Positions 15,221 to 58,715 of a stretch of DNA of 64,000 nt are shown in pieces. A program made the position numbers and the translations under genes. The stretch is from the IMG/VR virus record IMGVR_UViG_3300048924_000100, positions 150,199-214,198 of that record; one strand, given 5' to 3'. Numbering within the stretch: the stretch's first letter is position 1; every line of letters begins with the position of its first letter. The notes under the pieces were generated by a model that was not told the origin of the DNA, did not search any database, and saw only the letters and a program-made list of their open reading frames with translations.

Positions 15221-15258
15221 ATGTTGCTTTTAGATAATTTGCTAAGATATTTCAAACC

Positions 15259-15266
15259 TACATTAT
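15259..15266 (+). promoter_or_regulatory. Early-type promoter variant (aaaccTACATTAT)
   Basis: Same AAACC prefix as the TATATTAC sites at 48192 and 58708; upstream of the operon with the nvRNAP subunit. Confidence 0.5.
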
Positions 15267-45722: not shown

Positions 45723-48188
45723 ATGCTACTTAAACTAATTCTAGAGAACTATGTTCCACTCTTGAGTAGCAATATTCATAAAGTGGAACTCGATACCGAA
45801 CATATGATCAACCTCTTCATCTCGCTTAACGGCGTAGGCAAGAGCTCGATCCTCAAGGAGATGAACCCCCTACCGCCTGAGAATGGCAACTACGAGAATG
45901 GACGTAAGTTCGTTCAGTGGAAGGTTGGGAGTAAAGTCTACACCATGGACTCCTACACCGGCATTGGTAACGGTCACAGCTTCAAGATCGACGACGGTGA
46001 GGAACTCAACAAGAACGGTACCTTCAGCGTACAGAAAGAGTTGTGCGAAACACACTTTAAACTGGACAGCGGTATGGTTAAGGTGATCAGCGGTATTCGT
46101 ATTGCGGATCGCTTGTCGGCTATGTCTCCAGCCAGACGTAAAGACGTCCTCATGCAGATCTATCCGAATGACACCGACTATGCACTGGGTGTTTACAACC
46201 GCTTGAAGTCTGCTCGTAATGAATTGAAAGCAGCGATCAAGAACCAGGTGGCTCGTTATACCGAAGAGAACCGCAAGCTCTCTTACATTAACGAGTGTGG
46301 GGTAGAGGAATTGGAACGTCGTGTTCGCAGTGTAGAAGAAGAGCTGAAACAATCCCTTCTACTGCGCGGTAGTCTGGAATCGGTTAGACTGGATCCGGCT
46401 ACTCATGCCAAGAAGGTCGAACTCGATCTGTTGACAGACCAGTTACTCACCAACAAGCTCAGCCTGGTGTGGTTCAGCAAGCGTGAATACATCGACGCTA
46501 TCGAACAAGCCCGCCGTATGCTGGATGGTTACAGAGACCAGGCCAACGTGCTGCACGGTGTGATCAGTGAACACGCTGGCATGCTGGACGGCTTGGAAGA
46601 GTTCCTGAAGGATCCCGATACCTTTAAGGCTCAGACCAAACACGTTAAGAGCGACATTGCCGAGACTTTAATCAAGTTGGAACTGATCGACACGGCCCTC
46701 AAGCAATACCCGGTCTTCTGTGACCCTGAGAGCCCCCTGGACGGTCTTCCGCAGATAGTGTCGGCATTGGTACCGTTTCTTAATCGCGTGACTCCTGCGA
46801 GCACTACGGAGCTTACAGGTAACCAGTACAAGGCTTACCAAAGTCGTCTGGAAGTGGTGGCTACCACGCTACGCGATCTGAACAGCAATCTGTCTAACTG
46901 GCAGCACAAGTACAAGCACTACGAACAAGCCGAAACCGTTTCGTGTCCTGACTGTACCCATGAGTTCAAACTCGGGATGACACCTAAACAAGTCGGCGAA
47001 TTGAAAACGACCATTGACTACTCCTTGGGTCAGATCGCTAAATTAGAAGCCGAGAAGAAGGATCTCGAAAGTAAGCTGGAAAACGATTCGGAATGGTTTG
47101 TCAGCATGAACCAGTTGTTCGGGTTTATTCGCGAGAACAGCCACGTCCGTATCCTGCCTGAACTGGTTAAACAGTTTGAGGTAGGTCGTCACGCCAGTCC
47201 CCGTCTACAGAACGCCCTGGAACTCGTTAGCCGCAAAGCTGAGCTGTTAGGCTACCGTGACACCCTGAGCGAAGAAGAAAAGCTCCTGGACGCTCGTATC
47301 GCCCTCCTAGACCGTAATAAGGTATTGGATGTGGCGATCTACGTTAGCACCACTGAAAAAGAGCTGGTAGCGGTTAACAACAAGATCCTTTTCTACAAGG
47401 CCAAGATCGACGCGCTGAGCGGTACCCTACGGGGTATTCAAACCTATGGGGAAGATTTAAAGCGACTGGAACAATTGCGGTTCGAGATTCTGCAAGGTTT
47501 GGAGTATGAGGGTAAAGTAAATTTGCGTGTTGCGGTGGATCATCGCATCAGTGAATTGACCTCAGACAAAGAACACTACATGACCTCGATCATCAAGAGT
47601 CGTTCCCTGACAGCGGTGGTGCAATCCATCTCCGCCGACATCGCTCGCTTGAAACGACGCTTAACCATCGTTGAAGTGCATATGGACGGTCTGTGCCCTA
47701 ACAAGGGTTTGATCGGTAAGTTGATGAGTGACTTCATTAGCTCCATTTGCGGCAACATGAATGCGGTGGTTAACAAAATCTGGAACACCCCACTGTTCAT
47801 CAAACCGTGCAGCAAAGAGAACGGTGATCTGACCTACAAGTTCCCTGTGGTTAAAGGTGAGAAATCCCCTACCCCTGATGTAGCAGATTGCAGTGGCGGC
47901 GAAACTGATATTTTAGATTGGGCATTTCGCTTCGTGTTATTGGGGTACCTCGGATTCCCGCTTCCTCTGATCATGGATGAGGTGGGGCCATTCCTGGATG
48001 AAATCAAACGCGGCAGGTTCTTTAACTTTGTGGAGGAATACACACAGAGTAACGACGCCCGCCAACTGTTCCTGGTGTCCCATTACTTTAATCAGCTCGG
48101 GGTCTTCAGAGATCCTAACATCATTGCCTTGCGTTACGAAGGCCTTACTCTACCGGGTGAGGTGAACCAGCACTCAATAGTAATTTAA
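45723..48188 (+). CDS. sbcC: SbcC/Rad50-like SMC ATPase
   Basis: 821 aa. Walker A NGVGKSS, coiled coils, zinc hook CPDC, signature CSGGE, Walker B IMDE, H-loop LVSH. Confidence 0.9.
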   Translation: MLLKLILENYVPLLSSNIHKVELDTEHMINLFISLNGVGKSSILKEMNPLPPENGNYENGRKFVQWKVGSKVYTMDSYTGIGNGHSFKIDDGEELNKNGTFSVQKELCETHFKLDSGMVKVISGIRIADRLSAMSPARRKDVLMQIYPNDTDYALGVYNRLKSARNELKAAIKNQVARYTEENRKLSYINECGVEELERRVRSVEEELKQSLLLRGSLESVRLDPATHAKKVELDLLTDQLLTNKLSLVWFSKREYIDAIEQARRMLDGYRDQANVLHGVISEHAGMLDGLEEFLKDPDTFKAQTKHVKSDIAETLIKLELIDTALKQYPVFCDPESPLDGLPQIVSALVPFLNRVTPASTTELTGNQYKAYQSRLEVVATTLRDLNSNLSNWQHKYKHYEQAETVSCPDCTHEFKLGMTPKQVGELKTTIDYSLGQIAKLEAEKKDLESKLENDSEWFVSMNQLFGFIRENSHVRILPELVKQFEVGRHASPRLQNALELVSRKAELLGYRDTLSEEEKLLDARIALLDRNKVLDVAIYVSTTEKELVAVNNKILFYKAKIDALSGTLRGIQTYGEDLKRLEQLRFEILQGLEYEGKVNLRVAVDHRISELTSDKEHYMTSIIKSRSLTAVVQSISADIARLKRRLTIVEVHMDGLCPNKGLIGKLMSDFISSICGNMNAVVNKIWNTPLFIKPCSKENGDLTYKFPVVKGEKSPTPDVADCSGGETDILDWAFRFVLLGYLGFPLPLIMDEVGPFLDEIKRGRFFNFVEEYTQSNDARQLFLVSHYFNQLGVFRDPNIIALRYEGLTLPGEVNQHSIVI

Positions 48189-48191
48189 ACC

Positions 48192-48199
48192 TATATTAC
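48192..48199 (+). promoter_or_regulatory. Early promoter (aaaccTATATTAC)
   Basis: Exact phiKZ early consensus just after the sbcC stop; opens the accessory region. Confidence 0.75.
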
Positions 48200-48298
48200 T
48201 AGCAGGTAGAGACATAAGTGTCGTTGTCTCTTTTAGTTGTATTCGTACTGCAAGGTCCTGTTTATGACAGCCTACTACTTCTGGAAGAGATAACGATC

Positions 48299-48580
48299 AT
48301 GCAAACTGCACAGATCTCGATTGCGCAAAACACTGATGGCTCCTATTCCCCCCACGATCAAGGTATGGGGATGGCGTTCGTGAGCTACAACTACGACATC
48401 AGCGGCAAAACCGCTATCATCAACTTCGCCGGCATCAATCAGGCCAGCGTTACCTTCGATGAGACAGGCAGCACCGTGGTGTCTTACCACATGCTGAACC
48501 TGAACGCTACAGCGTCGGATATGACCACGGTCGAGAACATCGCCCGTTACCTCACTTCGGCGGTTGCTACCCTTCATTGA
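48299..48580 (+). CDS. Hypothetical early protein (93 aa)
   Basis: ATG 48299; first gene after the early promoter; beta-rich, low charge. Confidence 0.6.
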   Translation: MQTAQISIAQNTDGSYSPHDQGMGMAFVSYNYDISGKTAIINFAGINQASVTFDETGSTVVSYHMLNLNATASDMTTVENIARYLTSAVATLH

Positions 48581-48587
48581 GTGCGTT

Positions 48588-49055
48588 ATGAATGTATTAA
48601 GGTTCTTTATCAAAGACCCGGATCGGTTTACCGAACCTTTTGAACCAGTAGTGGTGCAGTTCGCACTGGCTGGGGAAAAGGTTCTGGTAGAGGTAGGACT
48701 CGTTAAGGATAACGGAAGGTTGCATTTCTCTATCGGGAAGCGGTTAACTGGCGATGGATCGCTACTTATTCTAGACCAGAAGCCCGTGTCTTCTGTGTCG
48801 CAACTAACGTTCCAGGCACGTCCTAAACGTTGGAGTGAAAGTCCTCTGTATACCCGTGAGTTCCTCCGGCATGCTTTCGAGGATTTTGTTTTGAATTCGC
48901 CTTTCGAAGGCTTTATAAGAAAGAATGTGAATCCACTGGATATCACTCAAATGTTTGCCAAACTAAGGGACACGAGTTCCCACTTAATCAACTTTCAATT
49001 GGGTATAGGTCATGAGAAAGGACGACGTGATTGTACAGTACATGGCATTGGTTAG
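48588..49055 (+). CDS. Hypothetical protein
   Basis: 155 aa from ATG 48588. Confidence 0.55.
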   Translation: MNVLRFFIKDPDRFTEPFEPVVVQFALAGEKVLVEVGLVKDNGRLHFSIGKRLTGDGSLLILDQKPVSSVSQLTFQARPKRWSESPLYTREFLRHAFEDFVLNSPFEGFIRKNVNPLDITQMFAKLRDTSSHLINFQLGIGHEKGRRDCTVHGIG

Positions 49056-49449
49056 TGAGCTGGGCGAGAGCGCACACAACGTAGTACTGAGCGCTGGGTC
49101 GGCTGCTGTTATGATGGACATCCGCAATGAAACGGATGATTTGGACGTCGATGTATTGCCCGGTGTATTCAAGTGGGCAGCGAGTAGCAAGACGATCCTT
49201 AAAGAAGAAGGGGTCAACGATCGGATAAAGTATTCCGATAAGGTTGATCTGCACGTACTGGATGAAGACCGGGGAAGGGTTTGCATCGACGGCGTGTGGG
49301 TTTACAGTCCCCGTGAACTGCTTATGCAAAAACGTGCAATGCTCCGTATCCCTGGACGCGGCATGGGTAAGCTGGTGCGAGACCAGATCGAAATCACCCA
49401 GCTGGAACAAATGGGTCAATCAACTAAATTTACTGCTAAAGCTGTTTAG
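49012..49449 (+). CDS. Minimal nucleotidyltransferase (Pol-beta superfamily), catalytic motif intact
   Basis: 145 aa; VVLSAGSAAVMMDIRNETDDLDVDV (GS plus DxD) and a third acid in KVDLH. Confidence 0.7.
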   Translation: MRKDDVIVQYMALVSELGESAHNVVLSAGSAAVMMDIRNETDDLDVDVLPGVFKWAASSKTILKEEGVNDRIKYSDKVDLHVLDEDRGRVCIDGVWVYSPRELLMQKRAMLRIPGRGMGKLVRDQIEITQLEQMGQSTKFTAKAV

Positions 49450-49458
49450 GGAAGTACC

Positions 49459-49926
49459 ATGTTTAAACTTGAAGTTGATGTGTGGCTGGCCGCTAAAGAA
49501 CGTATCCTTAAGCAGCTCGCTGTCCTGACCGACCAAGAACGTATCCCGGTCGAGAGTATCTGTTTGGGCGGCAGTGCGGCAATGGTGCTGATGAGCATCC
49601 GTAACGAAGCACGCGATGTCAACGTGTGGGTGGATTCGCCTTACTTCGAACGTCTGGCTGAAGACCACAAAGTCCTGGTACACCCGCTGCGTGATTCGGT
49701 TGTGCACATTCCGGACACCGAGGTTTATGTCCGCCGTCGTAACCGTTACTTCCAAAGCCACACCCTGGATAACGGCATTGATGTATTCGACGAGCTGACC
49801 CTGCTGATACTCAAGCGCACCAGCTACATCGATCCACACCGGTCTCTGGAACAACGGGAGAAAGACTTCCGGGATATCCAGATTCTGAACGACCTTCTGG
49901 CTGTCCGTAATAAAGTTGCTCCTTGA
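49459..49926 (+). CDS. Nucleotidyltransferase-fold paralog with degenerate active site
   Basis: 155 aa; ICLGGSAAMVLMSIRNEARDVNVWV (DxN in place of DxD); C-terminal REKDFRDI motif. Confidence 0.65.
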   Translation: MFKLEVDVWLAAKERILKQLAVLTDQERIPVESICLGGSAAMVLMSIRNEARDVNVWVDSPYFERLAEDHKVLVHPLRDSVVHIPDTEVYVRRRNRYFQSHTLDNGIDVFDELTLLILKRTSYIDPHRSLEQREKDFRDIQILNDLLAVRNKVAP

Positions 49927-49927
49927 C

Positions 49928-49970
49928 GATTAGGCATTGGCGGGTAACTCCCCCAGTGCCTAATCTTTTT
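49928..49970 (+). terminator. Intrinsic terminator
   Basis: Stem gattaggcattgg/ccagtgcctaatc plus T-run. Confidence 0.75.
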
Positions 49971-49997
49971 ATAGCGCATTTTGGTTTTTAGGTAACA

Positions 49998-50291
49998 GTG
50001 ATGACTGCCATTATTGCATCGCTAATAAGCGTTGGTTGTCTTTTCTTTTTCCTCGAAATGACCACTGGGCCATGGAAGTGGCTAGACCGTCTTACGGGTT
50101 GGGATGATCATCCTTCGCCTAAAGAGATCAACCAGATCCAACTGGACATATTGCTGAACCAGGAAGACCTCAGCGTTAGAGGCAACCGGGTAATCTGCAA
50201 CGAATGTTTACGAGAGAGCTGCGGCTTCTGTTTAAACGGCCCTGTGATACGTCAGGCACAAGAATTGTTAGATACGCGGGGTGAGCTATGA
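49998..50291 (+). CDS. Small membrane protein with Cys4 motif
   Basis: 97 aa; N-terminal TM; CNEC...C..C; ATGA overlap with the ligase gene. Confidence 0.55.
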   Translation: MMTAIIASLISVGCLFFFLEMTTGPWKWLDRLTGWDDHPSPKEINQIQLDILLNQEDLSVRGNRVICNECLRESCGFCLNGPVIRQAQELLDTRGEL

Positions 50292-58675: not shown

Positions 58676-58707
58676 CTATTCACACAACTTTTAATTTTTC
58701 ATAAACC

Positions 58708-58715
58708 TATATTAC
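58708..58715 (+). promoter_or_regulatory. Early promoter (aaaccTATATTAC)
   Basis: Exact consensus 28 nt upstream of the 58743 start. Confidence 0.75.

Follow-up and report, generated by a model that had tools for sequence, protein, structure and literature searches.

The 64,000-nucleotide stretch of DNA analyzed here, which we call the window (positions 150,199 to 214,198 of the 214,198-bp virus record IMGVR_UViG_3300048924_000100), carries two adjacent open reading frames (ORFs), A and B, which encode proteins of 145 and 155 amino acids (aa) and are separated by a gap of 9 nucleotides (nt). They close a unit of four genes in an EL-like jumbo phage from a root metagenome; the unit consists of a promoter motif, a small gene, gene X, A, B and a hairpin terminator (Table 1). 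A first-pass annotation made from the sequence alone had described A and B as neighboring paralogs, and this is confirmed: the two proteins share 23% identity over 135 aa (BLASTP, E = 2e-6), both match phrog_12854, whose function is unannotated (A at 1.1e-23 over residues 1-130, B at 2.1e-16 over residues 13-151), and a family profile of 126 representatives finds exactly two copies in the entire record, A at 1.7e-47 and B at 7.4e-17. A and B are ancient paralogs, and the branch of the minimal Pol-beta nucleotidyltransferase (NTase) fold to which they both belong is enriched in phages. The reading that we favor, with a probability of roughly 60%, is that A would be an active NTase and B a repurposed, non-catalytic binder. 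The start of A at 49012 is backed by M1, K3 and Y10, which are invariant in its orthologs, and an internal methionine chosen as the start by one gene caller was set aside on the same grounds.

Table 1. Features of the four-gene unit, given as positions in the window.
Feature	Position	Strand	Remarks
Promoter-like motif AAACCTATATTA	48187-48198	+	Directly 3' of the SbcC-like gene stop; T-rich stretch upstream
First gene of the unit, small phrog_16812 protein	48218-48580	+	PHROG match 2e-5
Gene X, ~155 aa	48588-49055	+	Orthologs at 31-79% identity in 9 loci
ORF A, NTase with complete catalytic signature	49012-49449	+	G29-S30, D43/D45/D47, D79/H81, K107, D124/E127
ORF B, predicted non-catalytic NTase-fold paralog	49459-49926	+	D53-V-N55-V-W57, Y90-V-R92
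Intrinsic-terminator-like hairpin + T5	49928-49970	+	Begins 2 nt past the B stop

Predicted fold and active sites

The AlphaFold2 models of A and B have a predicted local distance difference test score (pLDDT) of 95.4 each, and the top structural matches of both proteins, with Foldseek as well as with a Foldseek-independent aligner, are NTases only. For B these comprise MenT1 (score 9.9), TM1012 (9.2), ANT(2'') (9.2), LnuA (9.1) and the Megavirus poly(A) synthase (9.0). The neighbors found in AlphaFold-DB, Swiss-Prot, BFVD and ESM-Atlas agree, falling in AbiEii/AbiGii, ANT(2''), LinA and DUF6036/DUF2204 clusters and including uncharacterized proteins of the jumbo phages RP12, RSF1, PhiEaH1, 201phi2-1, Noxifer and Phabio. 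The kinship with AbiEii- and MenT-type NTases that had been proposed from motifs is upheld by these models, in which both proteins are predicted to have the minimal Pol-beta-type NTase fold, including the minimal alpha/beta core of the Pol-beta-like superfamily, and to belong to the structural group of TM1012, MenT/AbiEii and ANT(2'')/Lnu.

Profile searches for the characterized members of this group were negative. The AbiEii model (DUF1814, PF08843) and the RlaP model (PF10127) find nothing in the genome at E<=10, the Aminoglyc_resit model (PF10706) matches neither A and B nor anything else in the genome, the DUF6036 model (PF19502; gathering score 23.6 bits) gives no match for A or B at E<=1 or in the genome at E<=10, and no PADLOC family matches A or B at E<=1. 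Weak matches to NusA, ASNA1 and THO1 in the direct sequence searches were dismissed as chance. The region was also compared by megablast with phage records, a set from which the window's own record or its nearest ones may be missing, and no match was returned. A and B fail the hidden Markov model test for each of the characterized families and are best assigned only to the Pol-beta NTase fold and to phrog_12854. The family itself is sizable: an exhaustive search with A yields 143 clusters at 50% identity, mostly of 130-150 aa, and the relatives of A have in common the motif G-[GA]-A-x4-G-x-R-E-x-T-x-D-[LI]-D-[LV]-[DE]. Among the 126 representatives, 17 match DUF6036 (best 3.8e-7), which is described as a "nucleotidyltransferase of unknown function". 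No fusion of two NTase modules was found among the long family members, whose additional segments are unrelated, a GNAT domain being one of them. Family members in other phages lie in unrelated neighborhoods, among nucleotide metabolism, structural or hypothetical genes.

Three motifs define the Pol-beta-like NTase superfamily, namely hG[GS] where the second helix begins, [DE]h[DE]h in strand 2 and h[DE]h in strand 3, and three carboxylates in these motifs bind metal (PMC2794190). In A the glycine motif is A28-G29-S30, and three carboxylates are present in D43-L-D45-V, joined by D47, and in V78-D79-L80, the latter followed by H81. In B the glycine motif is G37-G38-S39, the strand 2 motif reads D53-V-N55-V-W57 and the strand 3 motif V89-Y90-V91-R92, which leaves a single carboxylate in the acidic motifs. 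R38 and T41 of A are accompanied in B by R48 and A51, and the C-terminal residues are K107, R116, K120 and D124-x-x-E127 in A and K119, R128 and K135-D136-F-R-D139 in B; the glycine motif, R48 and the C-terminal residues are thus kept in B. The first-pass annotation had given A a DLD motif with a third acid in KVDLH, and B a DVN motif apparently without the third acid, and had noted a MenT/AbiEii-type tail. D43, D45 and D79 of A, the Y90-V-R92 of B where A has D79-L-H81, and the C-terminal K/R/D-x-x-D kept in both proteins agree with this description, which requires one qualification: all motifs are as it described them, but the D79 of KVDLH is not invariant.

Among the 126 representatives, G29 is kept in 121, R38 in 122, D43 in 115, D45 in 119, H81 in 106, K107 in 112 and D124 in 124; the D47 position holds D in 78 and E in 9, and the D79 position D in 78 and S in 24, with G in some close orthologs of A. 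At the position of N55 in B, asparagine occurs in only 2 of the 126 canonical representatives, and the possibility that D-x-N is a normal active variant of the family, which had been named as a potential objection to an inactive B, was rejected for this reason. In the B clade, Y, W, C, R, T or P takes the place of the third acid. Superfamily members with one carboxylate are probably inactive and possibly nucleotide-binding (PMC2794190). MMP37 and NRAP are inactive NTase-fold proteins of this one-carboxylate type. In MenT1, mutation of T39, D41, K137 or D152, which represent the catalytic T/S-x-D, lysine and aspartate, abolishes toxicity (PMC10435456), and residues in the same order are T41-x-D43, K107 and D124 in A and A51-x-D53, K119 and D136 in B.

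The pair across related phages

Orthologs of both proteins are found in Pseudomonas phage EL, where gp120 (YP_418153) is 48% identical to A and gp121 (YP_418154) 37% identical to B, both being annotated as hypothetical proteins. The gene order in EL is SbcC-like gp118, gp119, gp120, gp121 and the NAD-dependent ligase gp122, and EL shares with the window phage the order, the neighbors, the upstream promoter motif and the contrast of D-x-D-x-D versus D-x-N-x-W, though it lacks two genes of the window phage, X ahead of A and the 97-aa gene past the terminator. A further 13 metagenomic jumbo-phage loci, of 184-236 kb, share this order, and the position of A and B between the SbcC-like gene and the NAD ligase is kept in about 15 EL-like loci at 35-86% identity. 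Ralstonia phage RP12 has a single A-like copy, which is intact, without B. Where individual related loci must be told apart below, they carry L-numbers (L005, L006 and so on).

Maximum-likelihood analysis groups the B proteins in a single clade (support 100/99), which has a long stem and stands apart from every canonical member, and B-type proteins were found only in EL-like contigs. P30, G37, G38, A41, R48, W57, D79, R92, N95, L115 and L143 are invariant in this clade, which extends down to 30% identity, and N55, H75, R94, Y97, F98, K119, R120, R128, D136 and D139 are nearly so. Comparison with five to six close relatives gives a ratio of nonsynonymous to synonymous substitution rates (dN/dS) of 0.15-0.25 for A and 0.13-0.29 for B, next to 0.12-0.28 for the ligase; both A and B are under purifying selection. 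The low dN/dS and the conserved replacement residues reject B as a decaying pseudogene. B had been called the degenerate copy, and this description does not hold: because the replacement residues are conserved across a deep, monophyletic clade and dN/dS is low, B is best interpreted as a neofunctionalized paralog.

Five related loci (L005, L006, L024, L025 and L026) carry an A ortholog without the acidic residues, which are replaced by M, V, I and R in L005, K, T, N and Y in L006, M, N, S and R in L024, N, L, G and T in L025, and C, N, D and V in L026. The replacement set differs in each of these dead A genes (L005:4001-4447, L006:4001-4459, L024:3001-3441, L025:3001-3429 and L026:353-817), and the isoelectric point (pI) of those in L005 and L006 is 9.5-10, compared with 5-6.5 for intact A. 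B with its D-x-N-x-W is kept beside the dead A in L006, L025 and L026, and L005 and L024 have the dead A and no B gene. L015 presents the converse arrangement, with an intact A and a B that is truncated and diverged. By this pattern A and B are gained, lost and inactivated independently, and A, the copy described as intact, is the labile one of the pair. Two further observations concern copy number in these genomes. L015 has a third family copy (133 bits) at G001:C1:114301-114708 on the minus strand, about 11 kb from the tandem locus, and in L006 dead A and B are separated by a 106-aa ORF (L006:4473-4793), whose match to the family profile (1.9e-7) is confined to the N-terminal part of that profile and which probably is the remnant of a further duplication.

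Independent gain and loss of the two genes is unlike what is expected of an obligate enzyme-regulator or toxin-antitoxin pair, and the persistence of B beside a dead A argues against B as a mere regulator or antitoxin of A. The first-pass annotation had suggested such a role for the dead copy, and the loci with B beside a dead A, with an intact A next to a decayed B or alone, and with only a dead A make it a poor fit. In its most specific form, A would be a MenT/AbiEii-like toxin that extends tRNA acceptor stems and thereby blocks charging, with B capping A until release. The structural kinship and the order of catalytic residues recall MenT toxins, though MenT1, MenT3, MenT4 and the AbiEii toxins are proteins of 195-300 aa, compared with the 145-155 aa of the acidic A and B, which their models do not match. 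The antitoxins of those systems are unrelated to their toxins, whereas B is a paralog of the enzyme, and no AbiEi- or MenA-like partner was seen among the neighboring genes, which have no Pfam match. With motif-intact B beside dead A in L006, L025 and L026, and intact A with decayed B in L015 or alone in RP12, we regard a toxin-antitoxin pair as unlikely. A structure prediction for a complex of A with B gave a score of 0.00, which carries no verdict and is evidence neither way.

Predicted functions of A and B

In the reading that we favor, A would catalyze the divalent-metal-dependent transfer of a nucleoside monophosphate (NMP) from a nucleoside triphosphate to an acceptor hydroxyl by two-metal catalysis. 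The metal ligands would be D43 and D45, together with D47, and D79; the triphosphate would be bound by G29-S30 and R38, and the C-terminal helices would contribute the last residues of the site, K107 and D124-x-x-E127, in the manner of the equivalent lysine and aspartate of MenT toxins. Because only one carboxylate is left, B would be incapable of NMP transfer. Its pocket appears to have been rebuilt, with W57, R92, R94, N95, H75 and D79 added to the retained R48, K119, R128, D136 and D139; arginines and a tryptophan would stand in for the metal ligands in the cleft, and the C-terminal K/R/D-x-x-D, whose counterparts complete the active site of MenT toxins, is kept. Judging from these residues, B most likely binds a phosphate-bearing ligand, either a nucleotide or a nucleic-acid end, without metal, and its job would be independent of catalysis by A. 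The earlier notion of an enzyme plus pseudoenzyme pair thus survives in part: the complete signature of A and the single carboxylate of B are in keeping with it, and what has to be given up is a degenerate B, in favor of a repurposed one.

Only rough odds can be given for the acceptor of A, because tRNA ends, small molecules and protein hydroxyls are all compatible with what is observed. An RNA or tRNA 3' end, as in MenT, is the candidate that we place first, at odds well short of even, and a small molecule, as in ANT or Lnu, is a possible but somewhat less probable acceptor; a protein is improbable, and acceptors of other classes take the remainder. The MenT-like residue pattern of A and its repair-gene neighborhood lean toward RNA ends, and its small size, acidic pI and best matches lean slightly toward small-molecule enzymes. 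For the role of the pair in infection, host manipulation or counter-defense at an early stage is, as a guess, the most likely.

The same neighborhood would also suit A and B as members of a repair or replication set, in which A would replace or add nucleotides at damaged RNA or DNA 3' ends prior to ligation, as has been suggested for RlaP NTases, and B would serve as an end-binding subunit. In favor of this role stands the conserved place of the two genes, with the SbcC-like nuclease subunit on one side and the NAD-dependent DNA ligase on the other; RNase H, DHH phosphoesterase and RNA-ligase-like genes follow downstream, and a pairing of Pol-beta NTases with RNA ligases is reported for jumbo phages (PMC7824862). 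The unit, however, has its own promoter motif and strong terminator, which set the pair apart from the ligase; A and B are not RlaP, relatives in other phages sit in unrelated neighborhoods, and several lineages do without catalysis. We therefore doubt that the pair belongs to such a set.

A further alternative makes A an ANT(2'')/Lnu-type O-nucleotidyltransferase of small molecules, which would inactivate or produce a metabolite such as an antiphage compound of the host or a signal, with B binding a related small molecule. The 145-aa length and acidic pI of A resemble those of ANT(2'') and LnuA; ANT(2''), LnuA and TM1012 are among the top fold matches; and neighbors in feature space include Aminoglyc_resit clusters. 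LnuA carries D-I-D-I-D and D-I-H motifs similar to those of A. A phiKZ-like contig encodes a fusion of a family member with a GNAT acetyltransferase, which would also fit, though this fusion is equally compatible with a tRNA target. That protein (P0116, L022:5001-5849) has the acetyltransferase as its C-terminal domain, and its gene adjoins phiKZ_IP and tail-tube genes. Set against these points, no candidate small molecule is known and the Aminoglyc_resit model finds nothing in the genome. We consider this alternative very unlikely. The known members of the families of TM1012 (PDB 2ewr), ANT(2'')-Ia, LnuA/LinA (PF10706) and DUF6036 (PF19502) are cellular resistance enzymes or uncharacterized proteins rather than tandem active/dead phage pairs, and A and B reach neither Pfam model.

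EL/phiKZ-type jumbo phages resist many DNA-targeting defenses, and to our knowledge few of their accessory genes have an assigned function. The first-pass annotation had also proposed the dead copy as a decoy against NTase-based host defenses, and a bolder version of this idea can be built on B together with the independently arisen dead A proteins. These would form a new class of phage counter-defense protein, an NTase-fold pseudoenzyme whose metal site has become an arginine/tryptophan pocket and which would either act as a sink for an immune signal derived from a nucleotide or imitate a host NTase (MenT/AbiEii, CD-NTase) so as to titrate its partner, with A as an optional add-on. We give this proposal only an outside chance.

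Several points weigh against an active A beside a repurposed B. Catalysis at the locus is dispensable in some lineages, because five related loci have an A without the acidic residues, and what selection chiefly maintains in these phages might be a wholly non-catalytic role of the family. The equivalence of residues in A and B to those of MenT rests on motif order, not on superposition, and the family is mostly acidic (median pI 5.6), which is an uneasy fit with tRNA binding. Sequence searches of A and B against Pfam, NCBIfam, PADLOC and PDB returned no relevant match, nor did a PDB sequence search with the family profile, and the link of A and B to DUF6036, a remote relative, is transitive only. 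Sequencing runs that contain the region are root and soil DNA metagenomes only, with no RNA runs among them.

An active and an inactive NTase of common descent are not without precedent. The Mimivirus/Megavirus polyadenylate synthase (PDB 4wse/4p37), which is among the fold matches, likewise has a catalytic and a duplicated non-catalytic NTase module, the second module being inactive in the Mimivirus enzyme. There the modules are fused and act on mRNA 3' ends, whereas A and B are separate genes and are lost independently. The principle of an active/inactive duplication is not new, because giant-virus poly(A) synthases and several eukaryotic families already offer examples of it. What is new here is a separate-gene active/dead NTase pair in phages, the deep conservation of the replacement motif in the dead copy, the repeated inactivation of the "live" copy A, and a family without a described function; the literature on DUF6036, on EL gp120/gp121 and on phage NTase pseudoenzymes yielded nothing on the A/B family.

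The locus places a deeply conserved enzyme and a repurposed non-enzyme of one fold side by side, and phrog_12854 gains a first functional hypothesis. Sister phages with a dead A, with no B or with a decayed B amount to natural "knock-outs", which opens the roles of the two proteins to simple assays. If B acts as a ligand sponge or a mimic, an NTase-derived class would join the known phage anti-defense proteins, and if A modifies tRNA or a small molecule, MenT-like or ANT-like chemistry would extend to lytic phages.

Transcription signals and neighboring genes

The AAACCTATATTA motif at the head of the unit matches a feature that phage EL carries in the corresponding position, annotated there as "putative phage promoter", and is the probable start of the transcription unit. 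The motif AAACCTAYATTA occurs in 3 copies in the window, compared with 0.37 expected (48187-48198, 15254-15265 and 58703-58714, all on the plus strand), and in 7 copies in the genome (the others at genome positions 10395, 28621, 47570 and 114801), all of them on the plus strand before genes, with a T-rich stretch upstream. It probably represents one promoter class of this phage group. Early promoters of the phiKZ type consist of a T-rich element and an extended -10 box (PMC8244752, PMC7598289), and the motif upstream of A and B is similar. By this analogy, early expression of the unit, which the first-pass annotation had put forward, is plausible.

The first gene of the unit likely starts at the ATG at 48299, and in all 15 of 15 related loci an ortholog of its phrog_16812 product is encoded after the SbcC-like gene and ahead of the NTase genes, the EL copy being gp119. 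Gene X has no Pfam or PHROG match, and the idea that it is a third, cryptic NTase was rejected, the hhalign probability against the NTase family being 0.2%. Gene X runs into the start of A with its last 44 nt; the tail encoded in this overlap (GIGHEKGRRDC...) is kept in the closest relatives but not in L005 and L006, and EL, L012, L013, L017 and L018 lack the gene altogether.

Downstream of the terminator the genes follow in the order 97-aa gene, ligase, RNase H, DHH phosphoesterase and RNA-ligase-like gene. The 97-aa ORF (49998-50291, plus strand) overlaps the ligase start (ATGA) and encodes a protein whose N-terminal segment is hydrophobic and which has a CNEC...CGFC cysteine pair motif; the ORF has no family match and is kept only in the closest relatives (L007, L008, L010 and L011).

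The strong terminator that the first-pass annotation had placed after the pair is well founded. It comprises a hairpin of 13+3 bp at 49928-49965 followed by T5 at 49966-49970 (-30.3 kcal/mol, z -4.3), and a strong hairpin stands in the same place in 15/15 related loci although its sequence has turned over. The hairpin is followed by TTATAGCGCATTTTGGTTTTT (49966-49995), a near-identical hairpin with TTATTTCGCATTTTGTTTTTT lies outside the window at genome position 97258, and related loci have CCTTAT..GC after their hairpins. Hairpin and downstream sequence may constitute a composite terminator-promoter signal for the next gene.

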